Below are positions 1,118 to 32,995 of a stretch of 32,995 bases of DNA, one piece after another; the stretch's first letter is position 1, and each line of letters begins with the position of its first letter. Location: the sequence record NC_030884.1. One strand, written 5' to 3'. Made by a program: the position numbers and the translations under genes. Below the pieces are notes generated by a model, which saw nothing but the letters and a program-made list of their open reading frames with translations, ran no database searches and was not told the origin of the DNA.

Positions 1118-1160
1118 GAGAGATACAAACGTAAAAAGTTGAAGAAAACTTTAAATACTA
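1118..1160 (+). promoter_or_regulatory. Class A (early/acr-type) BRE-TATA promoter of the HTH gene
   Basis: GAGAGATACAAACGTAAAAAG..GAAAACTTTAAATA, near-identical to 3537..3580 and 31835..31878(-). Confidence 0.75.
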
Positions 1161-1192
1161 GTTTATGCATATATGATATCAAGGTGTAAGAA

Positions 1193-1360
1193 ATGAAAAG
1201 ACAAGTAAGAGTTGGGAACACAATATATTACGTAGAAAGTGAGGATGATCTAGTTAGCGTGACTCACGAGCTAGCCCGACAGGGCATAAAAATTGAGAAA
1301 ATAGCGTATTTGTTGGGCGTTAGCGTGCGAAAAGTTCGCCAATATTTGGAGAGTTGTTAA
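1193..1360 (+). CDS. 55-aa HTH DNA-binding protein (SIRV terminal ORF56/83 family; probable Acr-associated repressor, Aca8-like)
   Basis: Not in ORF track; MKRQVRVGNTIYYVESEDDLVSVTHELARQGIKIEKIAYLLGVSVRKVRQYLESC, HTH pattern IAYLLGVSVRKVRQY; SD AGGTG; directly upstream of acrID1; 30/55 identical to the 31633 paralog. Confidence 0.85.
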   Translation: MKRQVRVGNTIYYVESEDDLVSVTHELARQGIKIEKIAYLLGVSVRKVRQYLESC

Positions 1361-1370
1361 GAAGTTAAGT

Positions 1371-1425
1371 TTTCTTTTTTTCTTCTTAGTTTCTAATGCT
1401 ATTTTTTTCTATTTTTTATTTTCTC
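1371..1425 (+). terminator. T-rich archaeal-type terminator
   Basis: Multiple oligo-T tracts right after the HTH stop; similar tracts follow nearly every arm gene. Confidence 0.6.
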
Positions 1426-1510
1426 CTAATTAGCTAAGATTATGCTTAGTTTTTTTCAGGATTGTGATACTAATTCTAAAGGTTGAAAAAATTGAGAGGT
1501 GAAAAAATAA

Positions 1511-1560
1511 AGAGATAGAGAAGTAAAAAGATAGAGAAAGATTTAAATAGCAGAAGATAC
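1511..1560 (+). promoter_or_regulatory. Class A promoter of acrID1
   Basis: AGAGATAGAGAAGTAAAAAGATAGAGAAAGATTTAAATAGCAGAAGATAC; near-identical copy at 31435..31485(-). Confidence 0.8.
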
Positions 1561-1584
1561 ATAGATTATGTTGGGGAAAGAAAA

Positions 1585-1875
1585 ATGAATTACAAAGAAT
1601 TAGAAAAAATGTTAGATGTAATATTTGAAAATTCCGAAATAAAAGAAATAGATTTATTTTTTGATCCTGAGGTCGAAATTTCAAAGCAAGAGTTTGAAGA
1701 TCTTGTGAAAAATGCAGACCCTCTTCAAAAAGTTGTTGGAGACAATTATATAACAGAAACTTTTGAATGGTGGGAATTTGAAAATCAATACTTAGAGTTT
1801 GAACTTGATTATTATGTCAAAGATGAGAAAATATTTGTTTTAGAAATGCATTTTTGGAGGAAAATTAGAAAGTAA
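1585..1875 (+). CDS. acrID1: Anti-CRISPR AcrID1 (type I-D Cas10d inhibitor)
   Basis: Matches my recollection of the characterised AcrID1 (MNYKELEKMLDVIFENSEIKEIDLFFDPEVEISKQEFEDLVKNADPLQKVVGDNY...EMHFWRKIRK); acidic, 96 aa. Confidence 0.92.
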   Translation: MNYKELEKMLDVIFENSEIKEIDLFFDPEVEISKQEFEDLVKNADPLQKVVGDNYITETFEWWEFENQYLEFELDYYVKDEKIFVLEMHFWRKIRK

Positions 1876-2068
1876 TCCTATTTTTTTAATTTTTTAATTT
1901 CATTTTAATTTTCTCTTTTTCTTTTTCTTCTTACTAACTAAAACTATGAACTATTTTTTTCAAAATTGTAATATTATTCCAGTTAGTTGAAAAAATGGAG
2001 AGATGAAATGATAAATAAAAATTTAAAAATGTCATAATCTAAAAGAAAATATAGAGGTGAGAAAAAGT

Positions 2069-2377
2069 ATGAATAAAGATATGGAAGAAGTAATAGATAC
2101 AGTTCAAAGATTAATACAAGAAAATATAATCGGTGAGAAAGTTGTCAGTTTTGAAAATTCAATAGACTTACACATTCAAGAATTCGAATGGGTGATAGAA
2201 GTTTTAATTTATGCAGATGTTAAACATTACTGGTTTACTATCGGGCGTGAAAAAAAGAGATATGATATATTTATTTTTGATAATACTAGAGAATTAAAAC
2301 GAATTATTATTGAAAGTCATTTTAATGTTGAAAGAATTTTTATTGATTCAATACAATTAATTAGATATCCAAGATAA
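2069..2377 (+). CDS. Distant AcrID1-like protein (102 aa from ATG 2069)
   Basis: GTG at 2057 lies within the SD GAGGTGA; SFENSIDLHIQEFEWVI resembles FDPEVEISKQEFEDLV; GTC-type promoter at 2022..2037. Confidence 0.6.
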   Translation: MNKDMEEVIDTVQRLIQENIIGEKVVSFENSIDLHIQEFEWVIEVLIYADVKHYWFTIGREKKRYDIFIFDNTRELKRIIIESHFNVERIFIDSIQLIRYPR

Positions 2378-2405
2378 TTTTGTTTTTTTCTTTTTTTCTA
2401 ATTAG

Positions 2406-2504
2406 CTAATTCTATCTTTAATTTTTTTCAAGTTTGGAATGATAATTCTATTTTTTAGCAATTTCCTAGAATGAAAATTTAAAATTGTCATAGTTTTATC
2501 GAAA
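2406..2504 (+). repeat. 99-bp direct repeat copy 1 (promoter block; copy 2 at 3834..3932)
   Basis: 96/99 identical by manual alignment; ends in TTTAAAATTGTCATAGTTTTATCGAAA. Confidence 0.9.
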
Positions 2505-2520
2505 TTTATTAGTGAGAAAT

Positions 2521-2862
2521 ATGGGCTATCAAGATATTCCAAATGAAATAATTAAACTAAGCGAAAAATATGTGAAAATTGTCGGAGAAAGAAAAAATAT
2601 ATTTAAAACTTTAAGAAGAAAAAGTATCGAAAAAAAGATAATAGAAAAATTTGAAAAATTTTGTGATATAATTCCATTATATATACTTGAAAATATACTT
2701 AAACCAAATAATGTTTTTGAATATAGTTTCGAAAAAAGTTATAAAAACAAAAGTGAGAAAATTGAAGTTATTACTAAAGCTAGACTAAAATTTAAATATG
2801 AAAATTATGAATTAAAATTATTAAGTGTTAAATTTGAAAAATCAATTAATCTAATTTCATAA
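2521..2862 (+). CDS. Basic 113-aa hypothetical protein, possibly a very distant AcrID1-fold member
   Basis: ATG 2521 after SD GTGAG; C-terminus RLKFKYENYELKLLSVKFEK resembles RLFFEKRNNMLKLTKIELEK of the 30584 ORF. Confidence 0.6.
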   Translation: MGYQDIPNEIIKLSEKYVKIVGERKNIFKTLRRKSIEKKIIEKFEKFCDIIPLYILENILKPNNVFEYSFEKSYKNKSEKIEVITKARLKFKYENYELKLLSVKFEKSINLIS

Positions 2863-2920
2863 TTTTTTTATTAGGAATACTATTTCTAAAAGTTAAAAAA
2901 TCAGAGAGATGAAAAAATAG

Positions 2921-2960
2921 AGAGATAGAGATGTAAAAAGATAGAGAAAGCTTTATATAG
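2921..2960 (+). promoter_or_regulatory. Class A promoter
   Basis: AGAGATAGAGATGTAAAAAGATAGAGAAAGCTTTATATAG. Confidence 0.75.
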
Positions 2961-2993
2961 TAGTTTGACAAATATAATATTGAGGTAAGAAAG

Positions 2994-3389
2994 ATGAGTC
3001 AAGAAATCGAATTTCCCGTAAATATAAATTTAGAAAGTCAAGAAGAAAAAATTCAACCGCAAGTCAAGAAGTTATACAAATTTTTTAATTACGTGAGTAA
3101 CTACCATAATGGGAAAATTGATACTATGACGACTCAAAGTTACCTATATTTATTCGTTAGAGACGGTGCCATTAAGGTTGATTATGATGGCGAAATTTCA
3201 ATAGAGACGACGGGTCTAAATATTTCAATTTGGGTCAATAGAGTAGAAAAAGAAGTAGAAATTAACGGTAATGCTAATGGATACGAGTTTAATATACAAT
3301 TTACCGGAAAAGTAAAAGTAAGGACAGAAGAAAATAGACTTGTATTGACGTTAAAGCCTGAGACAATTCCTCAAATTACAACTCATTAA
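2994..3389 (+). CDS. 131-aa beta-rich hypothetical protein, candidate anti-defence gene
   Basis: SD GAGGT, class A promoter, own T-rich terminator; no recognised motif. Confidence 0.75.
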   Translation: MSQEIEFPVNINLESQEEKIQPQVKKLYKFFNYVSNYHNGKIDTMTTQSYLYLFVRDGAIKVDYDGEISIETTGLNISIWVNRVEKEVEINGNANGYEFNIQFTGKVKVRTEENRLVLTLKPETIPQITTH

Positions 3390-3536
3390 TCATTTTTTAT
3401 TTTCTTTTTTTATTTTCTATTATTTTCTTCTTTTTTATGTTTTTTGTTTTTCTATAATTAGCCAATTCTCTCGATTGTTTTTTTCAAGTTTGTGATACTA
3501 ATTCAAGAGGTTGAAAATATAGAGACATAAAAAGTT

Positions 3537-3580
3537 AGAGAGATACAAACGTAAAAAGATAGAGAAAACTTTAAATATTA
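3537..3580 (+). promoter_or_regulatory. Class A promoter
   Basis: AGAGAGATACAAACGTAAAAAGATAGAGAAAACTTTAAATATTA. Confidence 0.75.
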
Positions 3581-3612
3581 GTTTTTACATATATAAGAAT
3601 GAGGTAAGAAAA

Positions 3613-3759
3613 ATGAAAACGAAAATGAGTAAGAAAGAAAACAAAAAGAATAAAGTTTATTTTTGCAGAATGTGTAGTTTTGTAGCTACAGATTTAGATG
3701 AGTTAGATTTTCACTATAAGATGAGTCATGAATCATTTGATGAAGACTCTTTTTGGTAA
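3613..3759 (+). CDS. 48-aa single C2H2 zinc-finger protein
   Basis: Not in ORF track; MKTKMSKKENKKNKVYFCRMCSFVATDLDELDFHYKMSHESFDEDSFW has C-x2-C-x12-H-x4-H; SD GAGGT, class A promoter and terminator. Confidence 0.8.
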   Translation: MKTKMSKKENKKNKVYFCRMCSFVATDLDELDFHYKMSHESFDEDSFW

Positions 3760-3833
3760 GCTTTAAGTTATTTTATTTTTTATTTTCTCTTTCTAATTCT
3801 TCTTTTATATGTTTTTTCTTTTTCTATAATTAA

Positions 3834-3932
3834 CTAATTCTATCTTTAATTTTTCTCAAGTTCGGAATAATAATTCTATTTTTTAGCAATTTCCTAGAAT
3901 GAAAATTTAAAATTGTCATAGTTTTATCGAAA
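3834..3932 (+). repeat. 99-bp direct repeat copy 2
   Basis: 96/99 identical to 2406..2504. Confidence 0.9.
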
Positions 3933-3948
3933 ACATAGTGAGAAAAAA

Positions 3949-4266
3949 ATGGAATTTGAAGATTTAGATGTAGTTCTATATGTATTTTTTGAAAATCAAG
4001 AAATGAAAAGTTTTGAATTTGAATTTAAAGAATTATTTGAAATTACTGAAAATGGATTAAGATATCTTGTAGGAGTTCCAGATTCAAGAAATAAAATCAA
4101 GAGTAATAGCGAAATTATTGAAGAATTTATATATTATCAGAATGATAATATTGTTATTAAGTTGACATTTTATTATACTAAAGACACGAATAAAATTTAT
4201 ATAAGAAAAATTTACGGTTGGAGAGAGAAAAGATCAGAATCTGAGAATGAAGAAGACAATATTTAA
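3949..4266 (+). CDS. AcrID1-family paralog (105 aa)
   Basis: MEFEDLDVVLYVFFENQEMK..FEITENGLRYLV..FYYTKDTNKIYIRKIYGWR aligns with AcrID1 start, middle and end. Confidence 0.8.
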   Translation: MEFEDLDVVLYVFFENQEMKSFEFEFKELFEITENGLRYLVGVPDSRNKIKSNSEIIEEFIYYQNDNIVIKLTFYYTKDTNKIYIRKIYGWREKRSESENEEDNI

Positions 4267-4287
4267 GTATGCTATTTGATTAATTTA

Positions 4288-5220
4288 TTATTCTTCTAAT
4301 TCAATTTCCAAATCATTATTACTTTTCTTTATATTTTGTGGCTTATTTTTCTTTATTTCACTTGCAATTTTATAGTTTTGAATTATCTCATTAACTAGAC
4401 TATCTAGTCCCATTTTTTTTAATTTCTTAGCATATATCGTATATTTATTTTCAATATTCCAATTATTATATTTTAAAATCCAAGCATTTATAGTTTGTAA
4501 AATTTTTACATTTGAAAGATCATATTCAAATGGAAAATTTGTCTTATCTAAAAATTCATATAATAGTTCTTCTTCTTCTTTTGTTAATGTTCTTTTTTTT
4601 CTATCGCCTACATATCTTCTAGAACCATCAAACCAAAAGATCTCTCTGAAACCTGAAATTCTTGTATAAGTTGAAGTATCCATAGAATTAGCATTATCAA
4701 AAGTTTGGAGAAAATATGGAGCAGACATTCCTAGAACATGAAGTTTTTTTGTGTATTTTCTTAGATAATAATACCAAGGAAATGTATAGATTAAAATTTT
4801 TAATTTACTAGATGCAATTATTCCGCCAAATGCTATATAATCAGTGTATTGTTTATAAAAATCTAAGGCTTCATCTACTTCTCTAATTGGATATAAATGT
4901 ATAACTGGGATAATTCTTTCTATATATTCAATTTTAGTATATAGATATTCGAAATATTCGAAATTCTTTCTATTTAATGGTTCAAAAATAGATGGAATAT
5001 CAAGAGAAAAAAATGCATAAGCATTATATGTTTTATATTTTTCTAATACATCTTTTACTGAAATTTTCAAATTGTAAAGGCTAATTTGATAACCGCCACT
5101 GTCAACCCAAGTTTCATTTTTCCAAGTTATTTTTTTGTTATGTAATTGATTAATCAAAACTGGAAAATTTGTCTTGAGTAATAGTTCTTTTGATGATGTT
5201 ATTTCAAATACTAATTTCAT
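4288..5220 (-). CDS. tRNA-guanine transglycosylase-like (TGT/DpdA-like) protein
   Basis: TGT motifs DSGGYQ, SLDIP, IIPVIH, IAFGG, HVLGMS, SMDTS; no CxCxxC zinc motif. Confidence 0.85.
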   Translation of the reverse strand: MKLVFEITSSKELLLKTNFPVLINQLHNKKITWKNETWVDSGGYQISLYNLKISVKDVLEKYKTYNAYAFFSLDIPSIFEPLNRKNFEYFEYLYTKIEYIERIIPVIHLYPIREVDEALDFYKQYTDYIAFGGIIASSKLKILIYTFPWYYYLRKYTKKLHVLGMSAPYFLQTFDNANSMDTSTYTRISGFREIFWFDGSRRYVGDRKKRTLTKEEEELLYEFLDKTNFPFEYDLSNVKILQTINAWILKYNNWNIENKYTIYAKKLKKMGLDSLVNEIIQNYKIASEIKKNKPQNIKKSNNDLEIELEE

Positions 5221-5228
5221 ATAACTTT

Positions 5229-6428
5229 CTATTTTGGTATGACATTTATTTTATTTCTTCTTAATAAGTATACTATAGATCCTATTATTGGTATTATTAT
5301 AATTCTTAATATTGTATCTTCTATATTTCCAGAGATTACAAATTTATAAAATATTGGATTTTGATATCCTAAGTAGAAGAATAGAAATATCTGAATTGCT
5401 AAAGATGTTAGAACTATAGAAAATAATTTTTTATCATTCATGAGTTTCAAATATGCAAATGCTACAATTATGAAATTCCAGAAGATGAACAATAAACCAT
5501 CAAGTCCAAAAGATATATTAAATCCAAGTAGATTTTCTAGAACATTTGCTATTGTTTCTGTCGCAAAAATCAATAATAAAATATTTGGATTTATTTTGCT
5601 AAATGTTTCAGGTAATACTTTATCGAAACTCATAGTTTGAATTAATCTACTTTGGATTTTATTTGCAATTGGCATGTAACTAAAGAACCAAATTGGCATT
5701 AATGCAAACAATATTGACAAATTTGAATAGCTATCTAGAATTGAAAGTATCACGACTACTAAATAGCTTACAAAATATCCGACCATACTAGATTTTTTAA
5801 TATTTTTTATTTCTCCAGCTATGTAACTGATTGCATTTATGAATATAAACGCTGATAAATCAAATAGTAATGCAGATAATAAAGTATTAGAAATTGTGAA
5901 GTTTTGATATTGAAAATTAAATGATTTAAAAACTATAAATAATGCTACTATTATTTGTGCAATTGCTAATATATCAACAATTTTTGCATATATTCTCTTA
6001 TTAGCGATAATTAGTAAAACAATAGGAAATAAAGATTCAACAATTAGAAATTGTTCAAATTGATTTTGAATATTAAAGTTTAAGAGTACAAGATCACCTA
6101 AGATTGGTTGAGATAGTACATATGTTAACCATAATGAAATTCCAAAAATTGTAAAGAATTTTGAAGAAAATGCAGTTCTAATATATGCATAATCACCGCC
6201 ATTAAGTGGATATTTTGTTGTTAAACGATAATACATTAATAATAGTGGAATTTCAAATACTGCTCCAATTAAAATTGCGTATAATAAGTTAACATTTTTT
6301 AGCAAACTACTGACAAATAATGGATAACTTATCCCGCTTAAAATTCCTATATAGAGAAGATTTATTGAAAAAATATCTAGGATATTAAATGATTTTACAA
6401 TTCCAGAACTTTTTCTTTCAAGTTCCAT
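5229..6428 (-). CDS. APC-superfamily (amino-acid permease-like) membrane transporter
   Basis: About 11-12 hydrophobic segments; YYRLTTKYPLNGGDYAYIRTAFS matches the APC loop motif (P..GGdYvY....f). Confidence 0.85.
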   Translation of the reverse strand: MELERKSSGIVKSFNILDIFSINLLYIGILSGISYPLFVSSLLKNVNLLYAILIGAVFEIPLLLMYYRLTTKYPLNGGDYAYIRTAFSSKFFTIFGISLWLTYVLSQPILGDLVLLNFNIQNQFEQFLIVESLFPIVLLIIANKRIYAKIVDILAIAQIIVALFIVFKSFNFQYQNFTISNTLLSALLFDLSAFIFINAISYIAGEIKNIKKSSMVGYFVSYLVVVILSILDSYSNLSILFALMPIWFFSYMPIANKIQSRLIQTMSFDKVLPETFSKINPNILLLIFATETIANVLENLLGFNISFGLDGLLFIFWNFIIVAFAYLKLMNDKKLFSIVLTSLAIQIFLFFYLGYQNPIFYKFVISGNIEDTILRIIIIPIIGSIVYLLRRNKINVIPK

Positions 6429-6471
6429 AAGCTCTTGTGCAGTTTAAGACATAAATAAAGACTCAAAACTA

Positions 6472-6489
6472 ATACATAATATAATGTAT
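6472..6489. promoter_or_regulatory. Palindromic element ATACATAATATAATGTAT upstream of the transporter/TGT operon
   Basis: Member of the ATACATwATATwATGTAT family (also 11525, 20747 and partial sites). Confidence 0.6.
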
Positions 6490-6664
6490 ATGATGTCTCC
6501 TTTTTGTAAGTAAAACTTCATTAAATTCTTATTGACAATAACAAAATTTTTTTATATAAATTTCATAGCAAGTAAATCAAACCATATACATTATATAATA
6601 TATATGATATATAGCTTTAGAAATAAGTTGATAAAAAAAAGAAAATATCTTTAATTTGGTTTTT

Positions 6665-6835
6665 TTAACCGCCTCGTTTTTGCAAATACTCTCTTATTGC
6701 TTCTTCTATAGCTTGAGTTAATTGAAGATTATTTTTTGCACAGTATACTTTCAGTCTAGTTTTCAAATCCTTGTCCATATAAATTCCAAATACTGCTTTT
6801 TGCTTCTTTTTTTGACTCTGTTCTTGAGTTTGCAT
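6665..6835 (-). CDS. svtR: Ribbon-helix-helix repressor SvtR (56 aa from ATG 6835)
   Basis: MQTQEQSQKKKQKAVFGIYMDKDLKTRLKVYCAKNNLQLTQAIEEAIREYLQKRGG matches recalled SIRV1 ORF56b; RHH pattern. Confidence 0.9.
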   Translation of the reverse strand: MQTQEQSQKKKQKAVFGIYMDKDLKTRLKVYCAKNNLQLTQAIEEAIREYLQKRGG

Positions 6836-6859
6836 TTTTCCTCGTTTGTTCATTTTGAT

Positions 6860-6882
6860 TTATGACATTTTTATATCTTTTT
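6860..6882 (-). promoter_or_regulatory. GTC-type promoter of svtR, embedded in the rep 3' end
   Basis: AAAAAGATATAAAAATGTCATAA identical to 7665..7687 and 10093..10115. Confidence 0.75.
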
Positions 6883-7219
6883 TTGTCTTTATCATATATT
6901 TATATACATTTTTTATATCACTTATATTTTTTGGAATTAATTCGATTCTTATATCAGTATGAGGAGGCATATGTTTGTGAACTCTAGAATAATCCAGTTT
7001 TTTATTCGTGAAAACTAAAATATGATAATGAAGACCATTTGAATTTTTTGTGGTTTCCTTTATAGAAAATACATGTGAATTTTTGTCATGATTATAAATA
7101 TAACTACGAAATTTTTTAAAAATTTTTTCAGTATCTCCATATTTATAATTAGTTGCAATAGTAATGAAATAAGTATAAGTATAAGAAAAATGAAAATTTA
7201 AAACTTTTTTCAAATCCAC
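6860..7219 (-). CDS. rep: HUH-family Rep endonuclease (119 aa from GTG 7219)
   Basis: Motif 1 FITI, motif 2 LHYHIL, motif 3 YKYMIK; matches recalled SIRV ORF119; the 192-aa track call is an over-extension. Confidence 0.9.
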   Translation of the reverse strand: MDLKKVLNFHFSYTYTYFITIATNYKYGDTEKIFKKFRSYIYNHDKNSHVFSIKETTKNSNGLHYHILVFTNKKLDYSRVHKHMPPHTDIRIELIPKNISDIKNVYKYMIKTKKDIKMS

Positions 7220-7320
7220 AATATTACGTGCGGAAATGACGTTTAAAAACTTATGTCGACAGAAAGGCGAAAGGTTTAAAAATGTATAATCACAAATTTT
7301 TATAAGCGAGGTGGCTAGAG

Positions 7321-7587
7321 ATCCAGCGTAGAAAGTATATATGCCTAAGAGTTCCAAGTGAAGTAAAACAAATTTTTTACGAAAAAAGAGAAGAGATAAA
7401 AAAACAATTAGATGATATTTTAGAAGGAAAAAGAACACTAGAAATTAAAGAAACTGCAGATTTATATGATGAAAAAGTATTCTTTACAGTAGATATGTTA
7501 TATTATGCGAAATTGCAAGAATTATCAAAAAAATATAAAAAACCATTATCGAAAATAATCAGATCTGTATTCTTTAATCTAAGTTAA
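7321..7587 (+). CDS. Cryptic tandem RHH-like protein (~88 aa) lacking a canonical start codon
   Basis: Stop-free frame 7306..7587: IQRRKYICLRVPSEVKQIFYEKREEIKKQLDDILEG..EKVFFTVDMLYYAKLQELSKKYKKPLSKIIRSVFFNLS; SD-like GAGGTG 7308..7313; T-rich tract after stop. Confidence 0.6.
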   Translation: MQRRKYICLRVPSEVKQIFYEKREEIKKQLDDILEGKRTLEIKETADLYDEKVFFTVDMLYYAKLQELSKKYKKPLSKIIRSVFFNLS

Positions 7588-7612
7588 ATCTTTTTTTTCT
7601 TTTTCTTTTTTA
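7588..7612 (+). terminator. T-rich terminator after the cryptic RHH ORF
   Basis: ATCTTTTTTTTCTTTTTCTTTTTT immediately after TAA 7587. Confidence 0.6.
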
Positions 7613-7664
7613 TTTCTCATATTATATATTGGAAATTCTATATTTCTCTTCATATTATGAAATT

Positions 7665-7687
7665 AAAAAGATATAAAAATGTCATAA
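7665..7687 (+). promoter_or_regulatory. GTC-type promoter of the SSB-ATPase-nuclease operon
   Basis: TATA-like ATATAAAAAT followed by GTC, the rudiviral promoter trinucleotide as recalled from SIRV transcription work. Confidence 0.75.
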
Positions 7688-7714
7688 TTAAAAGATATTT
7701 TTAGAGGGAGAAAC

Positions 7715-8110
7715 ATGGCGTCCCTTAAACAAATACTGGATGAATTAGGAAAACAAGCTAAAGAACAAAACAAGATAGCTAGTAGAATTTTAAAGATAAA
7801 GGGAATAAAAAGAATTGTTGTACAATTAAATGCGGTTCCACAGAATGGTTCAATAAGATATTCAATGACAATCCATAGTCAAAACAATTTCAGGAAACAA
7901 ATTGGAATAACGCCACAAGACGCAGAAGATTTAAAATTGATTGCAGAGTTTCTAGAGAAATATGCAGACTTTCTTAATGAATATGTAAAGTTTACTCCAA
8001 GGAATAATAGCACAGTTCAAGAAGAAGAACTAGACATGGAGCAACAAGAAGAAAAAGAAGAAAAACCTAGTACGAAAAGCAGAAAGAAGAACGTAGAGGA
8101 GGAGTTTTAA
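7715..8110 (+). CDS. Single-stranded DNA-binding protein (SIRV ORF131 family)
   Basis: Matches recalled SIRV2 gp17 family; acidic low-complexity C-tail ending VEEEF typical of SSB partner-binding tails; first gene of the operon. Confidence 0.8.
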   Translation: MASLKQILDELGKQAKEQNKIASRILKIKGIKRIVVQLNAVPQNGSIRYSMTIHSQNNFRKQIGITPQDAEDLKLIAEFLEKYADFLNEYVKFTPRNNSTVQEEELDMEQQEEKEEKPSTKSRKKNVEEEF

Positions 8111-8135
8111 AACGTCATAAAGTCATTTTTTTTTC

Positions 8136-9458
8136 ATGAATGAAACTACACAACAGAATCTTCAATTATTTGAAAAGTTAAAAAGTCATTCTTTTTTTTA
8201 TAATCCAAGAGATAATGAAAGAATTTTAAGTCTAATTCTTGGCGAAAAACAAGTTGAAGAAAATAAGAAAATTGAGATTTTGAAAGCTTACAAGAGAGGA
8301 ATTGATTCTCAATATTTTAGTGCTAATTTGCCATATTATAACGAAATAAAATTTATAAGTAAAATTACTGGATTTAAAGTTAAAGATGATCTAGTAATTG
8401 CAAAATTTCAAAATGGTTTTACTGGAGATTTTGATCCACATGAAATTGCTGATAATCCAGATGATTTTTATAATCTTATTTCTTCATATATGTTTGTAAA
8501 GATCAAAAAAGGATCAGAAAACTGGTTTATTGATGAAATATTTTCTATAGAACCGCCTAATAATTTTGAAATTGCAAAAGAAATTCTAGAAGAAGCTGAT
8601 AAACAACATTTAACTTATGCTATTCTATTGCAAGCTTTTGGATATGATTCACAAAAGATGGATTCAGATGATATTTTCTTAACTTTACCACGATTATTCC
8701 CACTTTTCAAATCTCCAATTACTAAAAGACAGATAAACACAATAGAAATTTCAAATAGAGGTACTGGAAAAACTACAACATTTATGATTTTACAAGAAGT
8801 TTTCAATTTTCGTTATTATACAGAACCTCCAACTTATGCAAATTTGATCTATGATGCTAGAAATAATATGTACGGTTCAGTATTTTTATCAAACGGATTA
8901 ATTTTTGACGAAATACAAACTTGGAAAGATGGATATGCAGTTAAAGAATTAAATTCTATAAATTCTACATTATCTACTGGAATTGAAAATTGCATTTGGA
9001 CAAGAGGAGCAGGTACAGAAAGTAAATCTGCTACAATTCAAAAATGTATTCCAATTATTTATGCTGGAAATCCTTTCTCTTTAACTTTAGATAAATATCA
9101 AACTCCAGATATAGAATCATATTTACAACAATATGAAATTTTTACGCCGGCAATTTTAGATAGAATTCATATTATTCAATTAGCAATTAAGAAAACTTAT
9201 GATAAAATAATAAATGCTAGAGTTCTTTATCCTTCAATTCTAAGAGCATTAGTGGAATTAATTCAGGAAAAAATTAACAGAACTACAAATTATGCGGACT
9301 GTGGAAATCTAGAAAGTAGAAGAAAAGAACAATCTATAGATATTCAAATACTTTTACAAGCTTTAGATATAGATTTGCAAATTGGAAAAGTTTCAAATGA
9401 AGAAGTATGTAATAAAATTGTAAATCTAATGAGATTTAGCAATTTAGGAGGATGGTGA
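8136..9458 (+). CDS. AAA+/P-loop ATPase (SIRV ORF436/440; annealing/helicase-like)
   Basis: Walker A SNRGTGKT, Walker B LIFDE, sensor AGNP, arginine-finger-like ILDRI. Confidence 0.88.
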
Positions 9459-12195: not shown

Positions 12196-12327
12196 AGCGA
12201 TAAATTTGGATTTGACATTTTTAAATGCTATTAAATCCAATCAACCATATACATTATATTTATTATATGAATTATAGGTTAAGTTATCAGTCAGCTTTAT
12301 TTTTGTCATAATTTTTAGATTTCAATT

Positions 12328-14279: not shown

Positions 14280-14368
14280 ATGATATCTTTTATCTCAAGC
14301 CGTTAAAAAATATACAAGTAGCATAATACATATATATTATATAATGTATATAGTGTTTAGATTTTGTG

Positions 14369-15757
14369 TTATCTGACTGCAATATTTTGAAAGTTTTTAT
14401 AATGGAAAATTGGCTTATATTGTTTCGTTTTTGCAGATTTTTGAGCTAATTTTATCTGATTCTCAATTTTTGCCTGTCCTTGTAATTGTTCTCCTAATTG
14501 TTGTGCAAATTGCAAATCTTGATCTGAAATGCCATAAAATTTCCACTTAGTTTTCCAATAATTCAAAAATTCTTGATATGATAATGTTCTTTTTCCAGAT
14601 GTATAACTGTAATTTTGTTGGTAAGGATATCTTGCAATTTCTATAGTAGCACTTGCTACCATTTTCGCGTACCAAATATTTGCATATTTCTTATTGACAA
14701 TTTTTTGAACTTGTAAAAATTGCTCATATGTAACTGCATAGTTTTCAATTTCTGAACTATAAGCTATATTTGTACCGCCTGGAGAAGGATCATATAAATG
14801 CATTTTGAATAGATTTCCAAATATCGAAATTACAGTTTTATCTGCGGATAGAATTGCTATTAGGTCATCTTGAGTTACATTTTCTGGATTAAAATCAGGC
14901 ATTAATACGGCAAAATCAAGAGGAGTATAATCTAAAATCATTCCAAAAACATCTGCAAAATATTGTAAAATCATACCATTTTGTAATTGAATTCCATCTT
15001 GAGTTTCTGGAGCTAAAACACATCTATCTAACCAACCGACATCTAAAGCAAAACCACTATTAATTATACTATTTAAGTCTGGAATAAATGCAATTATGAA
15101 TTTGGCAAAATCTGGAAGTTGATTAAAATTGATATTTAAAGCATTTAACAAATCTGAAATACCAGTATCTGCAATATTATTATATATATAGTTATCTACA
15201 TTTGGAATATTTGTACTACCAATTCCTAAAGTTGTAACATCAACACTGACATTTGCAGTAGTTAAACTAGAAAAAGATTGTTCAATTTTCTGACAAGATT
15301 GATTTTGATATTCTGTAGCTAATGCCGGCTGATATACAGATAAATCAAAATAAGTTTCATCAAAAACTGCCGGTTGATACAAAACTGAACATAATTGTAC
15401 ATAATTATCATATAAACTAGTATAATTATTTAATAAACTTATTCCATTTGAAGTACCAAAATTTGCAGATTGACCTAAATTAAGAAATGTTTGAGAATTA
15501 AAATTAGGATTAAAAGTTGAACTTGCTAGATTATTTAATGCAGAAAGTAAAGAAGAAACAATTGAAGCATATGCAATTCCATAATTTGTATTTATTCCTG
15601 GAGGAATTTGAATATTCTCTAATGGAGTCGGCAAAACTGAAGAAACTCCAGCGTCAAACATTACAGAAAATGCGGGAAAAGATTTTCTATTCAATATTTT
15701 ATTATACAAGTGATATTTCATAGCTGAAATATTTCTTTGACCTTTCCTTTTTCCCAT
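14369..15757 (-). CDS. Minor virion structural protein (SIRV ORF486/488 family); start probably MGKRK at 15757
   Basis: Long ORF in the recalled syntenic position; the upstream extension to 15853 overlaps the divergent promoter, so start is uncertain. Confidence 0.75.
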   Translation of the reverse strand: MGKRKGQRNISAMKYHLYNKILNRKSFPAFSVMFDAGVSSVLPTPLENIQIPPGINTNYGIAYASIVSSLLSALNNLASSTFNPNFNSQTFLNLGQSANFGTSNGISLLNNYTSLYDNYVQLCSVLYQPAVFDETYFDLSVYQPALATEYQNQSCQKIEQSFSSLTTANVSVDVTTLGIGSTNIPNVDNYIYNNIADTGISDLLNALNINFNQLPDFAKFIIAFIPDLNSIINSGFALDVGWLDRCVLAPETQDGIQLQNGMILQYFADVFGMILDYTPLDFAVLMPDFNPENVTQDDLIAILSADKTVISIFGNLFKMHLYDPSPGGTNIAYSSEIENYAVTYEQFLQVQKIVNKKYANIWYAKMVASATIEIARYPYQQNYSYTSGKRTLSYQEFLNYWKTKWKFYGISDQDLQFAQQLGEQLQGQAKIENQIKLAQKSAKTKQYKPIFHYKNFQNIAVR

Positions 15758-16314: not shown

Positions 16315-16680
16315 ATGAACATTAGGCAATCTGGTAAGTATTATGAATATAAAACTTTAGAAATTCTTGAACAAAATGGATTTAAAGCGTTAAGAATTCC
16401 AACTTCTGGAACTGGAAAACAAGCAATTCCAGATCTTATAGCGACAAAAGACAATACAATTTATCCAATTGAAGTAAAGTCAACTTCAAAAGATTTAATA
16501 ACTATTAAGAAATTTCAAATTGAAAAACTTTTCAAATTTTGTGAAATTTTCGATTTCTGTAATTGTCAACCATTAGTAGCTATTCATTACAAAAAATATA
16601 AAACTGTCATAGTTTATACTTTGTCTCAAGATGTCAGAAACAAGGAAAAAATCAAATTTAAATACGGAATTAACAGCTAA
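16315..16680 (+). CDS. hjc: Holliday junction resolvase (archaeal Hjc family)
   Basis: GKYYE..L..NGF..LRIPTSG, PDLIA, IEVKST PD-(D/E)xK motifs. Confidence 0.95.
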   Translation: MNIRQSGKYYEYKTLEILEQNGFKALRIPTSGTGKQAIPDLIATKDNTIYPIEVKSTSKDLITIKKFQIEKLFKFCEIFDFCNCQPLVAIHYKKYKTVIVYTLSQDVRNKEKIKFKYGINS

Positions 16681-16840
16681 ATTGTATTTAGCTCTAGATG
16701 ATCTAACTATGGCTTTAGCAACAGAAGATAAAGAAGAAGTTAGAAAATCTGAAGTATTTCAAAAAGCTTTAGAAGTTGTAAAAGTTGTAAAAGAAATGAG
16801 AAGATTACAAGTTAAACCTGTTGAAGGTGAAGAAAAATGA
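16631..16840 (+). CDS. 69-aa helical hypothetical protein
   Basis: Own GTC promoter inside hjc (16594..16611); ATGA-coupled to acrIII-1. Confidence 0.75.
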
Positions 16841-20671: not shown

Positions 20672-20746
20672 CAATTTCTAAACATCATATACATTATATA
20701 TTTTATATAGTGTATGGGTTACGTTATCACATGCAAAACAACTCAT

Positions 20747-20764
20747 ATACATTATATAATGTAT
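20747..20764. promoter_or_regulatory. Perfect 18-bp palindrome ATACATTATATAATGTAT
   Basis: Upstream of the minor structural genes; a 16-bp direct copy TCATATACATTATATA also lies at 20685..20700. Confidence 0.7.
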
Positions 20765-20807
20765 TAGATTTGATTTTTTATTTACCGCATTTTTGATATA
20801 TTATATC

Positions 20808-28471: not shown

Positions 28472-28620
28472 TTACCTATTCACCACCTTCAAAAATCTAA
28501 AAGAATTATGACATTTTTAAATCTTTATTTTTTGGAATAAGTAGGATTAATATTTGGAATTTGAGAAAAATTATCGATAGAATTAGGTAATTAGGAGAAA
28601 AGAAAAAATTTAAAAAAAGA

Positions 28621-28923
28621 TTAACTTTCAAATTGACTTTTTAATTTTTCTGCTATGCTAGAATGCATACACAAAAACTTTTTGTTTCTTTTTACTTTTT
28701 TAACTTTTATGAAAAATATGCCTTTCTCTACTAATCTCATTATCCTGAAATAAGCATATGGTTGATATTTTTGTGCATCTTGTTCAAATAAAGTTAGTTT
28801 ACCATTAGAATTGTACATGGAAATACATAGATCTCCAACCTCATCCTTTTGTGCAATTGAAAAAAACTTTTGTAATAACTCTTTTTGTTTTGACCTTAGA
28901 CTTAACTTTATTTGTTCAGTCAT
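28621..28923 (-). CDS. 100-aa basic hypothetical protein (from ATG 28923), candidate anti-defence gene
   Basis: SD GGTGA and class A promoter directly upstream; the track's 12 extra residues are promoter sequence. Confidence 0.75.
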   Translation of the reverse strand: MTEQIKLSLRSKQKELLQKFFSIAQKDEVGDLCISMYNSNGKLTLFEQDAQKYQPYAYFRIMRLVEKGIFFIKVKKVKRNKKFLCMHSSIAEKLKSQFES

Positions 28924-28954
28924 TTTTCTTTCACCAATATACATTATGTAAAAA

Positions 28955-28994
28955 CTCATATATAAAGCTTTCTCTCAATTTTTACGTTTATAGC
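28955..28994 (-). promoter_or_regulatory. Class A promoter
   Basis: Minus strand AAACGTAAAAATTGAGAGAAAGCTTTATATATGAG. Confidence 0.72.
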
Positions 28995-29151
28995 TTTCTA
29001 CTTTTTTATGCTTACAATTTCTGCGGAATTAGTAAAAATATCTAAAAAATGAGAAAAATTATCGATAAAAATAAATAATTATAAGAAAATAAGAAATTAG
29101 AAATACTAGAAATAATATTAAGAACTTGAAAAAAATTATTGATAAAAAAAA

Positions 29152-29601
29152 TTAACTTGATAACAAATATGCTAATAAGACAAGAACATCAGTAGGAACA
29201 TTAACGCCTGTGATATCTTTTATCGCATTTAGTAATGAAGATAATCCTTTTATATCTATTTGGCTTTTGCTTGTATCGACTAATAAATTTCCGCTGATAT
29301 CATCTGCTACATTCAGTAAATCGAAATTGACAACTTCATAATCACTTAGAAATATTGGTGGACTTATAGGAATGAAGGAAAATAGTAAATTCCCCTTTTT
29401 ATCGCTCCATAACTTTAGTATTACTTTTTTTGATAACGGAACATAAAACACATCCTTATTGATTGCTTTCTTGATGATATATTGGTATACGCCGAAATGT
29501 GTCTTTATCACAAGCAATGATAGTCTACTACTATCAAGACTATCGTCATTACTGAAAAAATAATATGCTTTAACTTTTTTTTCGACTTGTGCTTTTTCCA
29601 T
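29152..29601 (-). CDS. 149-aa candidate anti-CRISPR (locus syntenic with SIRV2 acrIIIB1)
   Basis: ATG 29601 after SD GGTGA; class A promoter; lies just downstream of pvap, where I recall acrIIIB1 in SIRV2; homology not verified. Confidence 0.55.
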   Translation of the reverse strand: MEKAQVEKKVKAYYFFSNDDSLDSSRLSLLVIKTHFGVYQYIIKKAINKDVFYVPLSKKVILKLWSDKKGNLLFSFIPISPPIFLSDYEVVNFDLLNVADDISGNLLVDTSKSQIDIKGLSSLLNAIKDITGVNVPTDVLVLLAYLLSS

Positions 29602-29630
29602 CCTTTTCACCAATACTATATATGTAAAAA

Positions 29631-29670
29631 CTAGTATATAAAGTTTTCTCTAATCTTTTACATCTCTATT
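29631..29670 (-). promoter_or_regulatory. Class A promoter
   Basis: Minus strand AGAGATGTAAAAGATTAGAGAAAACTTTATATACTAG. Confidence 0.72.
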
Positions 29671-29748
29671 TTTCATCTTCAAAACTTGAAAAATATGCAA
29701 AAATAAAATATAAAAAAGACTAAAAAAATAATACCTTAAAAATTAAAA

Positions 29749-30403: not shown

Positions 30404-30583
30404 TTTTCTTTCCCCAATATTTCCATAAAAATATGACAATTTTATATTTTTACATCTTAAATTTTTCTATCTGCAGAATTAGTATCTGGAAAATGAAAAA
30501 AATTCGGCATAGCTTTAGCTAATATTTAGAAAAGAAAAAAACAAACTAAGAATTAAAAAGAAGAAAAAGAAAAAAAGAAAGAC

Positions 30584-30907: not shown

Positions 30908-30930
30908 CTTTTTCCCCTCATTCTTTCATA

Positions 30931-30980
30931 TGTATCTTCTACTATTTAAATCTTTCTCTATTCTTTTATCTTTCTATCTC
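30931..30980 (-). promoter_or_regulatory. Class A promoter
   Basis: Minus strand ATAGAGAAAGATTTAAATAGTAGAAGATACA. Confidence 0.75.
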
Positions 30981-31120
30981 TTTATCTTTTCACCGTCTTG
31001 ATTTTTCAACCTCCTGAATTAGTATCTGAAAAATGAAAAAAATAGTCCATAGTCTTAGATAATAAAGAAAAAATTAAAAAATAAAAATAAGAAAAAAATT
31101 AATGAAATAAAAAAAGAAAA

Positions 31121-31411: not shown

Positions 31412-31434
31412 TTTTTACTCACCACTTACATATA

Positions 31435-31485
31435 TGTATCTTCTGCTATATAAATCTTTCTCTATCTTTTTACTTCTCTATCTCT
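31435..31485 (-). promoter_or_regulatory. Class A promoter, mirror of the acrID1 promoter
   Basis: AGAGATAGAGAAGTAAAAAGATAGAGAAAGATTTATATAGCAGAAGATAC, one mismatch to 1511..1560. Confidence 0.8.
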
Positions 31486-31632
31486 TTATTTTTTCACCTC
31501 CTTGATTTTTCAACCTTTACAATTACTATCACAAAACTGAAAAAAACTAAGCATAATCTTAGCTAATTAGGAGAAAAATAAAAATTCTAAAAAGGAGAAT
31601 TAGAACTTACAAATAAAAAAACAAAACTTAAC

Positions 31633-31803
31633 TTACCAACAGTCTTCTAAATATTTCCTGACCTTTTTCTCACTGATTCCTAGTCCGTATGCAATCTCCT
31701 TAACTGTAAACCCTCTTTTGACTAACTCATGAACTATGCTAACTAGGTCATCCTCACTTTCAATATAGTACGTTTCTCCTTCAATTATTACTTCTTTTTT
31801 CAT
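31633..31803 (-). CDS. 56-aa HTH protein, paralog of 1193..1360 (Aca8-like)
   Basis: ATG 31803; YYIESEDDLVS..IAYGLGISEKKVRKYLE; the 92-aa track call runs through the promoter. Confidence 0.85.
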   Translation of the reverse strand: MKKEVIIEGETYYIESEDDLVSIVHELVKRGFTVKEIAYGLGISEKKVRKYLEDCW

Positions 31804-31834
31804 TTCTCTTTCACTGATATCATATATGTAAAAA

Positions 31835-31878
31835 CTCATATATAAATCTTTCTCTAAACTTTTACGTTTGTATCTCTC
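31835..31878 (-). promoter_or_regulatory. Class A promoter straddling the right ITR boundary
   Basis: Minus strand GAGAGATACAAACGTAAAAGTTTAGAGAAAGATTTATATATGAG. Confidence 0.75.
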
Positions 31879-32995
31879 GACTTTCAATAAGAAGTTTCCA
31901 ATTTTTATCATCGCTGCATATATAAATTGAAGGTTCCAATTTTTCTATCTCCAATTTTTTAAAAAAGGCCACTTTTTATTCCTAGCATGAAACAAATTGA
32001 TTACGAGCGGTGAAAAAGTCTAAAAGAATCTATTTTGAACTGAAGAATAATTATATAATTAATAACTACTATCTAGCTAATTAGCTAATATATATAATAT
32101 ACTAATTAACTAATTAGCATAATATACAAATATATAAATATTAAGATATTACGATTGTAATAATATTAATATATATAAAAAAATAATAAAAAAAAGAAGG
32201 ATAGTCCTCACTAACATAATTAAATGCCTTCTGCTAGTATTTAAACTTTTCTCTCTAAACTTCCAATTTCCTCCATTGCAAACGCAAAAAATTGAAGCAT
32301 AAATTACTAATTGCAAACTAAAAATTTGGAAATTATATAATATATTATAATATACGAATATGTTTAGTATATTTATAATTTTCAGCCGTAAAAGTTTTGG
32401 TTTCTCCTAATTATTAATTAATAATTTAATAGCTCCTAATATATATATATCTGGAAATGTATAATTATTTGGAATTTAGGAATTTACAATTAAGCAATTT
32501 TATAATATAAATTTCAACAAATGATAGAATATTTGGAATTTTGTAATTTCCAATTTACATAACTAATTGGAATAATTTTCCAAAGTGAACAATTAATTGG
32601 AATTTTGGAATTTTCAATTTTATTAACTTTTTGTAATAAATTTCCAAGGTGTACAATTTATTGGAATTTAGGAACTTAGGAATTTACAATTTAGTTAACT
32701 TATTGGAATATTTTTACAAGGTGTAGAATTAATTGGAATTTAGGAACTTCCAATTTATTAACTTTATTTTGAAAATTACGCAAAATGACAGAATAATTGG
32801 AATTTAGGAATTTAGGAATTTTCAATTTATTAACTTTGGTGCGAAAAAAACGAAAAAAACGAAAAAAATTGGAATTTCCAATTTATCTCATTAGTTGCGA
32901 AATTTACGCAAAAAATGAAAAAAACTCCTAATACCTTCTTAATGTTTTATAATTGTAGAGTAGTAAAAAGGAAATGGGAGTTTTTTTCATTTTTT
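31860..32995. repeat. Right inverted terminal repeat (1136 bp)
   Basis: Reverse complement of 1..1136; contains AATTTAGGAATTTAGGAATTT at 32801..32821. Confidence 0.95.

Follow-up and report, generated by a model that had tools for sequence, protein, structure and literature searches.

A composite spacer parts the arm genes of Sulfolobus islandicus rudivirus 3 and looks like a site of anti-CRISPR gene loss, swap and conversion

The 32,995-nt stretch of DNA analyzed here (the window) comprises the entire linear genome of Sulfolobus islandicus rudivirus 3 (SIRV3), with 100% identity to NC_030884.1/KX712143 (32,995 bp). In both terminal arms of this genome, small genes are preceded by copies of a composite spacer in which, in gene direction, a T-rich tract after the previous stop codon is followed by M2, M3, often M4, a promoter and a Shine-Dalgarno (SD) sequence. 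Arm genes are probably single-gene units parted by copies of this one spacer, which would have two roles, expression and insulation on the one hand and recombination crossover on the other. The composite spacer is real and its promoter component was already known; the new element is that its copies also look like sites of anti-CRISPR gene loss, swap and conversion. An initial annotation of the window had read the arms as gene cassettes on a shared chassis that both expresses and mobilises an anti-defence library, an interpretation that our results support in part.

The genome is bounded by a terminal inverted repeat (1-1214 and 31782-32995, 98% identity). Its left arm consists of gp01 to gp07 and its right arm of gp36 to gp45, the latter on the minus strand and with the same construction, and the two arms are co-linear until about position 2015. 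The anatomy was read from the 240 nt upstream of each arm gene, using corrected starts for gp45 (31803), gp39 (28923), gp04 and gp42; the annotated starts of gp45 (31911) and gp39 (28959) fall within their own promoters (RefSeq gp45 31633-31911, gp39 28621-28959). M2 and M3 form a 58-nt block that contains CTAATTAGCTAA and TTTTTTTCA..GATACTAATTC. Within this block, M2 reads (C/T)TAATTAGCTAA followed by CTATG.. or CTATC.. and holds the palindrome CTAATTAG, and M3 reads TTTTT(T/C)TCA, seven variable bases and (G/A)ATAYTAWTTC. The optional M4 reads GGTTGAAAA..GAGAGATGAAAAA. Promoters are of two classes, A and B. The elements and genes are positioned as follows.

1118-1192, plus strand: gp01 (aca8) class A promoter, 5' leader and SD, with the end of the perfect terminal repeat at about 1137
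1193-1360, plus strand: gp01, Aca8, a 55-amino acid winged helix-turn-helix (wHTH) protein
1361-1423, plus strand: T-rich tract after gp01 with three T runs of at least 5, putative archaeal terminator
1424-1476, plus strand: M2-M3 block (CCTAATTAGCTAAGATTATGCTTAG-TTTTTTTCAGGATTGTGATACTAATTC), holding the non-conserved stem-loop
1480-1509, plus strand: M4 block (AGGTTGAAAAAATTGAGAGGTGAAAAAAT); M3-M4 at this place, the aca8 3' flank, is nearly invariant across distant rudiviruses
1510-1584, plus strand: class A promoter (B recognition element (BRE)/TATA box at 1533-1549), leader and SD of gp02
1585-1875, plus strand: gp02, AcrID1
1928-2068, plus strand: gp03 spacer with M2-M3 (1930-1980), M4 (1985-1993), class B promoter (2022-2036) and SD
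2069-2377, plus strand: gp03
2384-2520, plus strand: gp04 spacer with M2-M3 (2398-2448), variant M4' and class B promoter (2478-2492); 95% identity over 121 nt to 3812-3932, with a perfect 63 nt at 2442-2504
2521-2862, plus strand: gp04
2863-2993, plus strand: truncated gp05 spacer with T7, the 3' half of M3, M4 and class A promoter (2943-2959)
2994-3389, plus strand: gp05
3390-3612, plus strand: gp06 spacer, mosaic
3613-3759, plus strand: gp06, C2H2 zinc finger, between 45-nt direct repeats (3425-3469 and 3797-3841)
3812-3948, plus strand: gp07 spacer with M2-M3 (3826-3876), M4' and class B promoter (3906-3920)
3949-4266, plus strand: gp07, AcrID1-family paralogue
28472-28620, minus strand: gp38 spacer with M2-M3 (28544-28594) and class B promoter (28507-28521)
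28924-29151, minus strand: gp39 spacer with two tandem M2-M3 (29109-29144 and 29032-29067) and class A promoter (28959-28975)
29152-29601, minus strand: gp40, AcrIIIB2
29602-29748, minus strand: short gp40 spacer with T runs, TTTTTCAAGTTTTGAAGATGAAAAA and class A promoter (29635-29651)
30404-30583, minus strand: gp42 spacer with T-rich tract, M2-M3 (30476-30528) and class B promoter (30432-30446)
30908-31120, minus strand: gp43 spacer with T-rich tract, M2-M3 (31016-31066), M4 and class A promoter (30943-30959)
31412-31632, minus strand: gp44 spacer with T-rich tract, M2-M3 (31520-31572), M4 (31507-31515) and class A promoter (31447-31463)
31804-31878, minus strand: gp45 class A promoter; gp45 itself (31633-31803) is the second, divergent aca8 allele

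With expectations taken from dinucleotide-preserving shuffles, the class A core (GTAAAAAGATAGAGAAAGNTTTAWATA, a 27-nt pattern with up to three mismatches) had 7 matches against 0 expected, the M3 pattern TTTTTTCANNTTNNNRATRNTAATTC had 10 against 0.81, and a longer M2-M3 pattern had 7 against 0. All these matches lie in the arms in gene orientation, with none for M2-M3 or class A in the core genome. Sequences like CTAATTAGCTAA were weakly enriched (29 against 16) and have copies in the terminal repeat too, and AGGTTGAAAAA was not significant as a stand-alone motif (6 against 2.75 expected). The repeated block noted in the initial annotation is therefore real, but it does not precede nearly every arm gene as had been stated: the full M2-M3 is found at 10 of 17 arm genes, gp05 and gp40 have truncated versions, gp01 and gp45 have the promoter only, and no spacer element precedes gp41, gp37 or gp36. 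Class A sites coincide with direct-repeat families D7, D11 and D12. When 43 units were collected from Icerudivirus arms (SIRV1, SIRV1 variant XX, SIRV2, SIRV3 and three SIRV1 variant fragments), M2-M3 stacked gap-free over 58 nt. The block goes with both promoter classes, and among the 43 units the M2 type, the M3 type, the promoter class and the presence or absence of M4 occur in all combinations.

The spacers also hold all exact direct repeats of at least 16 nt in the SIRV3 arms. Spacer copies repeat each other in direct orientation along one arm and in inverted orientation from one arm to the other; their similarity is 70-95% over 60-200 nt and includes exact runs of 13-63 nt. The longest direct repeat, a perfect 63 nt at 2442-2504 and 3870-3932, flanks gp04-gp06 with its copies 1,428 nt apart.

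The genes behind these spacers belong to at least eight unrelated protein families, namely Aca8, AcrID1, gp03, gp04/gp43, gp05, C2H2 zinc finger, AcrIIIB2 and gp39. Both gp01 and gp45, labelled "terminase small subunit" in RefSeq, are Aca8 wHTH proteins. Besides gp02, which is AcrID1, the arms contain gp07, with 85-90% amino acid identity to SIRV1 ORF102 and SIRV2 ORF105a; AcrID1-family paralogues number seven in the arms, and gp04 (72% amino acid identity to SIRV2 ORF116) and gp43 make up a second paralogous family. The SIRV2 relative of gp03, ORF108 (60% amino acid identity), is located in the right arm. AcrIIIB2 (gp40) has been validated experimentally in S. islandicus (PMC10681719), and gp39 is 69% identical to SIRV2 gp47, which was named AcrIA3 in a preprint. 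The 48-amino acid zinc finger gp06 is listed as ADG.04 and gp05 as the predicted anti-defence gene ADG.13 (Bhoobalan-Chitty, 2024; PMC11065993). Calling this gene set an anti-defence library is largely right (AcrID1, AcrIIIB2, gp39, Aca8), with the exception of gp41, the egress pyramid protein, which has no spacer element before it. The two aca8 alleles of this one genome encode proteins with only 55% identity, gp01 being nearest to the Aca8 of SIRV2 (75%) and gp45 to that of SIRV1 (64%), so the arms look chimeric between virus lineages.

Class A promoters, which carry AGAGAAAGNTTTAWATA or close variants, serve gp01, gp02, gp05, gp06, gp39, gp40, gp43, gp44 and gp45, and consist of a purine-rich BRE directly upstream of a TTTAWATA box, that is, a strong core promoter. 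The nine class A coordinates of the initial annotation were all correct. A second promoter class, class B (TTTAAAAWTGTCATA), precedes gp03, gp04, gp07, gp38 and gp42. Class B also stands before the core genes gp10, gp12 and gp15 and is thus a promoter type of general viral use. A class B promoter-like site (AATATAAAACTGTCATAGTT) further lies ahead of a 69-amino acid frame at 16631-16840 (region 16595-16840), which is annotated in SIRV2 (ORF69) and absent from the SIRV3 record.

A regulatory consensus that precedes early genes at rudiviral termini, composed of a strong BRE/TATA promoter with conserved flanks, was recently described in Nat Commun, with Aca8 proposed as its repressor, and was used to predict anti-defence genes (Bhoobalan-Chitty, 2024; PMC11065993). 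The supplement of that paper lists SIRV3 BHS13_gp01, 02, 05, 06, 39, 40, 43, 44 and 45. The class A core is this published early anti-defence motif, with the identical nine SIRV3 genes, so that the expression part of the earlier interpretation is both supported and already published. The two descriptions share the BRE, the TTTAWATA box, conserved flanks, single small genes at rudiviral termini and the presumed Aca8 repressor. They differ in that the T tracts, M2-M3 and M4 lie further upstream in class A units, and in that M2-M3/M4 are common also to class B genes, which PMC11065993 excludes: gp03, gp04, gp07, gp38 and gp42 are not in its SIRV3 list, in which shorter gp45 coordinates are used. 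That study covered only 100 nt upstream of start codons, the words "terminator" and "recombination" are absent from it, and the transcript data it cites are from SIRV2.

In the first 60 nt past the stop codon, most arm genes show T runs of 6-8 and a T content of 55-78%. Oligo-T on the coding strand is a termination signal for archaeal RNA polymerase. Within this distance, a run of 7 or 8 T occurs in 13 of the 17 arm genes, and at least one run of at least 5 T in 16, most of which have two to five, as the initial annotation had observed for the T-rich tracts. No such run follows gp07, and gp04, gp37 and gp38 have only 33% T over 60 nt. Few core genes show comparable T-rich 3' flanks, and we regard the T tracts of the arms as putative archaeal terminators. 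The stem-loop that had been noted with them (CTAAG-ATTATG-CTTAG) does exist in the two copies named, at about 1431-1450 and in the right-arm paralogue, with energies of -7.2 and -5.5 kcal/mol at 37 C, but these values are not significant (z-scores -1.5 and -1.3). The eight other SIRV3 copies fold at 0 to -2.8 kcal/mol, leaving a hairpin in 2 of 10, and the 43-unit alignment showed no conservation of the stem-loop in SIRV1 or SIRV2 copies. A conserved hairpin terminator was consequently rejected. A search of Rfam found no known RNA family in the window.

Comparison with related viruses provided several signs of exchange at the spacers. In the slot held by AcrIIIB1 in SIRV1 and SIRV2, SIRV3 carries AcrIIIB2 (gp40): coming from the pyramid gene, the sequences stay similar across the promoter as far as the SD, diverge at the start codon and match again from the stop codon. 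Comparison of these sequences indicates that one reading frame was exchanged for the other, precisely from start to stop codon, with the spacer frame around it conserved. That gp40 might be a diverged AcrIIIB1 was rejected (hhalign probability 0.2%), and no relatives of gp40 were found in phage records, viral contigs or metagenome contigs. Another gene, gp38, has been inserted downstream of a promoter and ahead of the gp37 start codon. Over 85 nt, its spacer (28507-28591, minus strand) shares 98.8% identity with the spacer that precedes ORF95 in SIRV1; with adjacent core genes at 88-90%, an identity so far above the core suggests recent exchange between the SIRV1 and SIRV3 lineages. The gp03 family, for its part, is found in different arms and beside different neighbours in SIRV3, SIRV2 and SIRV1 variants.

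Spacers themselves are mosaic. For the gp07 and gp42 cassettes, orthologue-level identity begins 50 and 49 nt before the start position, respectively, at the TATA box, in every comparison, and upstream of it there is spacer-level similarity only. The gp07 gene and promoter are 92-93% identical to orthologues, with orthologue-level identity from 3899, and the 87 nt before this point (3812-3898) are 93% identical to the SIRV3 gp04 spacer, compared with 65-72% to orthologue spacers in four other genomes. The M4' variant in the gp07 spacer is native to the gp04 lineage, and the segment 3812-3898 appears, from these alignments, to have been converted by the gp04 spacer. The spacer between gp05 and gp06 has three parts with best matches at three different loci: a T-rich part (3425-3469; 91% identity to 3797-3841), M3-M4 (3478-3533; 94.6% to the SIRV2 aca8-downstream spacer) and the promoter (3538-3584; 95.7% to the SIRV2 aca8 promoter). 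In addition, the inner end of the perfect terminal repeat lies in M3 for SIRV1 (2032), where the promoter and SD of gp02/gp53 meet for SIRV2 (1602), and in the aca8 promoter, within its class A core, for SIRV3 (about 1137), past which SIRV3 has its two aca8 alleles. The end thus falls within spacer elements in three of four genomes, and elsewhere only in variant XX. With regard to gp42 (30403, minus strand), this gene has ATA where AcrID1-family paralogues have ATG, a codon kept in SIRV1, SIRV2, SIRV3 and variant XX; a short upstream frame ATGGAAATATTGGGGAAAGAAAAATAA ends overlapping the ATA codon, and databases give inconsistent up- or downstream starts.

Spontaneous deletions in SIRV2 stocks, for which exact coordinates are available (Table 1 in Mayo-Munoz et al., 2018; PMC6315595), were mapped onto the SIRV2 sequence. 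The SIRV2M deletion 1491-5474 (gp02-09) joins the M3 downstream of aca8 and upstream of gp02 to the M3 upstream of gp10, in register, and its junction holds an identical 13-nt run (ATTTTTTTCAAGT) within about 55 nt of about 85% similarity. Both ends of deletion 32426-33939 (gp51-53) lie in homologous 63-nt M3-M4 tracts upstream of gp50 and gp53. As M3-M4 blocks make up 1.8% of the SIRV2 genome and 5.5% of its dispensable arms, the chance of finding four of four SIRV2M end points in M3-M4 is 1e-7 genome-wide and 9e-6 within the dispensable arms; for at least four of six end points within the arms, the probability is 1.2e-4. Repeats at the deletion borders are not mentioned in PMC6315595, and our literature search, whose coverage stopped short of the original SIRV2M description, did not turn up any account of the upstream block or of recombination between repeats in rudiviruses.

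Taken together, these data are consistent with each arm gene being a self-contained single-gene transcription unit, with a spacer that would ensure the expression and insulation of an anti-CRISPR regulon thought to be controlled by Aca8. With their direct and inverted arrangement and exact runs in common, the copies could then also serve as crossover points for ordinary homology-driven recombination. Plausible agents are the annotated recombination proteins of the virus, namely a single-stranded DNA-binding protein, an annealing ATPase and a Cas4-like exonuclease (gp12-14), as well as the Holliday-junction resolvase (gp27). The outcomes observed are deletion between copies, frame-for-frame replacement, spacer conversion and a terminal repeat whose inner boundary has shifted. 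What the genomes show directly is the anatomy with its statistics, the mosaic structure and the positions of the junctions; that recombination at spacer repeats is more frequent than elsewhere is our inference. The recombination role could be selected for or be a by-product.

Several observations weigh against a recombination role. Of the three laboratory deletions, two depart from clean homologous joining: 32426-33939 is 34 nt out of register and leaves M3-M3-M4, and 5678-8557 ends within two genes without homology, so illegitimate joining also occurs. A homoplasy test of the PHI (pairwise homoplasy index) type on 43 aligned units gave only a marginal signal, with p 0.02-0.04 at short range and no significance over longer distances. 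Spacer copies from one genome resemble each other no more than copies from different genomes do (0.696 vs 0.688, p 0.11), which means that exchange is episodic rather than pervasive, and genome-wide concerted evolution of the copies is not supported. Because viable variants are expected to break between genes under any mechanism, intergenic position alone is weak evidence. Finally, the near-invariance of M3-M4 described below points to a sequence-specific function beyond the recombination explanation. End points of BLAST matches were abandoned as a breakpoint test because alignments run into any similar spacer copy, which biases them. The initial annotation had expected gene-content changes among rudiviruses to fall at the repeats; the AcrIIIB swap, the gp38 insertion, the gp03 contexts, the deletions and the terminal-repeat ends do lie at spacers, but deletion 5678-8557 does not. 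Mobilisation is accordingly backed by loss, replacement, conversion and boundary shifts of the terminal repeat, with one of three deletions unrelated and one out of register.

Among deposited genomes, the complete M3-M4 pattern was found only in SIRV1, SIRV2 and SIRV3. The American SIRV9 has two matches to the M2-M3 block (0 expected), beside five class A promoters. A metagenome scan yielded four contigs of distant rudivirus-like genomes (Ga0080003_1002483, Ga0080003_1007740, OGCG01024811.1 and OGCG01015315.1), which encode an Aca8 with 33-40% identity, an AcrIIIB1 homologue with 31% identity and several SIRV9-like genes, and in which DNA similarity to SIRV arms is restricted to spacers. These contigs have M3-M4 once, directly downstream of aca8, about 88% identical (by eye from the alignment) and nearly invariant, and repeat the class A promoter five times without M3-M4. 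Such near-invariance across distant rudiviruses suggests that M3-M4 is under purifying selection. From this distribution, the ancestral place of M3-M4 would be the aca8 3' flank, with later amplification in the Icelandic viruses. A scan of viral contigs with the 18-nt M2/M3 junction was too unspecific to use.

The same near-invariance is an argument for regulation alone, by which spacers would be alike because each has to end transcription of one gene and start early, Aca8-controlled transcription of the following one, recombination would be no commoner there than elsewhere and selection would remove in-gene breaks. Purifying selection on a cis function would explain why M3-M4 hardly differs between Icelandic SIRVs and contigs whose Aca8 is only 33-40% identical, and the lack of genome-wide homogenisation, the weak formal recombination test and the spontaneous deletion unrelated to repeats all fit. 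We nevertheless find regulation alone unlikely, as it leaves unaccounted an in-register junction with 13 nt of identity inside M3, four of four SIRV2M end points in a target covering about 5% of the arms, and a 121-nt tract that is 95% identical before two unrelated genes where positional orthologues differ. Terminal-repeat boundaries inside spacer elements in three of four genomes and the free assortment of multi-nucleotide module variants are equally unexpected under it. For M3-M4 only, it is possible, and we advance it tentatively, that the block is primarily an operator or insulator for Aca8 or a host factor, ancestral at the aca8 3' flank, and not a terminator. The inverted arrangement TTTTTTTCA ... 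TGAAAAA, about three helical turns apart, would suit such a site, as would the occurrence of M3-M4 with both promoter classes and the distant contigs in which it stands once after aca8 and not at the five class A promoters. On the other hand, T7 runs alone are archaeal termination signals, and an Aca8 site presumed to lie no more than 100 nt before the start codon (PMC11065993) excludes M3 in class A units; covariation gives no test here because both repeat arms are invariant. Sites for the host activator Sta1 were also considered as an account of M2-M4 and set aside, its consensus (ATNT-N8-WNAT) being too degenerate and the studied promoters being others.

If the spacers were relics of tandem duplication of an AcrID1-type gene with its flanks, coding sequences would have diverged in the arms race and flanks would be similar by descent. 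The seven AcrID1-family paralogues, the gp04/gp43 family and the co-linearity of the arms to about 2015 agree with such a history, which is improbable all the same: the same spacer precedes the unrelated Aca8 wHTH, C2H2 zinc finger, AcrIIIB2, gp39, gp05 and gp03 families, the gp03 family lies in different arms and neighbourhoods among viruses, and each spacer is a mosaic whose closest relatives are at different loci. The high, gap-free conservation of M2-M3 in 43 units, its palindrome CTAATTAG and the position of gp06 between 45-nt direct repeats might instead recall a site-specific, integron-like system, with M2-M3 as the site for a dedicated recombinase moving gene circles. We consider this highly implausible, given that no integrase or transposase was annotated or detected in the genome, that every cassette has its own promoter, unlike integron cassettes, and that crossovers vary (M3, class A core, promoter/SD junction, start codon); variable crossover positions fit general homologous recombination. 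A more elaborate scheme, which is speculative and to which we give little credence, would have M2-M3-M4 as a cis element present once per arm, at the aca8 3' flank, and amplified in Icelandic rudiviruses as a "landing pad" copied at each gene insertion. It would amount to a homology-driven, integrase-free equivalent of an integron, in which AcrIIIB1 and AcrIIIB2 would be exchanged between co-infecting viruses via excised circles or double crossovers and gp12-14 would set the rate.

Other repeats occur outside the spacers. A cluster of CTAATTAG / GCTAATTAGC palindromes, with the same core as M2, lies in the terminal repeat at 879-923 and 32073-32117. The terminal repeat also contains, at 119-566 and in its mirror copy, an array of 64/72-nt units around AAATTCC(T/A)AAATTCCAA (families D1-D4). 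Another repeated element, CATATACATTATATAAT(G/A)TATAT.., is found in core intergenic DNA at 6455-6628, 12243-12291, 14315-14374 and 20686-20769 (D13, D16, D19 and D20).

Anti-CRISPR and counter-defence genes of archaeal viruses change quickly. Recombination at the spacers, if true, would explain the shedding of arm genes by stocks passaged in CRISPR-free hosts, the presence of two unrelated type III-B inhibitors in one slot, and the different lengths of the terminal repeats of SIRV1, SIRV2 and SIRV3. Under it, SIRV3 is expected to lose gp04-gp06 by a 1,428-bp deletion between the 63-nt perfect repeats, and the spacers would be natural insertion sites for engineering rudiviruses. Beside the published promoter motif, M3-M4 is an added search handle for rudiviral arms and a candidate operator or insulator.

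The SIRV3 arms can be compared with several known systems. As in bacteriophage acr-aca loci, a helix-turn-helix regulator gene (aca8) stands beside anti-CRISPR genes under strong early promoters; SIRV3, however, has a regulon of monocistronic units at both genome ends, each with its own promoter and putative terminator, rather than one operon. Integron cassettes are likewise small, unrelated and dispensable genes in one orientation, with a recurring element between them and variable content among relatives, but SIRV3 has no annotated or detected integrase, a promoter per gene and variable crossover points. The closest likeness, already pointed out in the initial annotation, is to the promoter-early stem-loop (PeSL) elements of T4-type phages (Arbiol, 2010, PMC2839356; Comeau, 2014, PMC4122927). 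Both are repeated intergenic composites of about 100 nt that combine a terminator with a strong host-type early promoter, both crowd hyperplastic regions upstream of small orphan genes, and both bound insertions, deletions and replacements between close relatives, a crossover leaving a single chimeric element. The SIRV3 promoter is an archaeal BRE/TATA promoter and not a sigma-70 one, which makes the likeness functional and not a sequence match. Moreover, SIRV repeats, in a linear genome with hairpin ends, are also inverted from one arm to the other and coincide with the limits of the terminal repeats, and the SIRV spacer has an extra, strongly conserved M2-M3-M4 block. The repeat composite and the element-bounded changes therefore hold for both, but the defining stem-loop is not conserved in the SIRV spacer, in which termination would rest on oligo-T tracts; for this reason, we did not file it as a PeSL member. 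By analogy, the spacer appears to be an archaeal, hairpin-less counterpart of the T4 PeSL elements that works like one.

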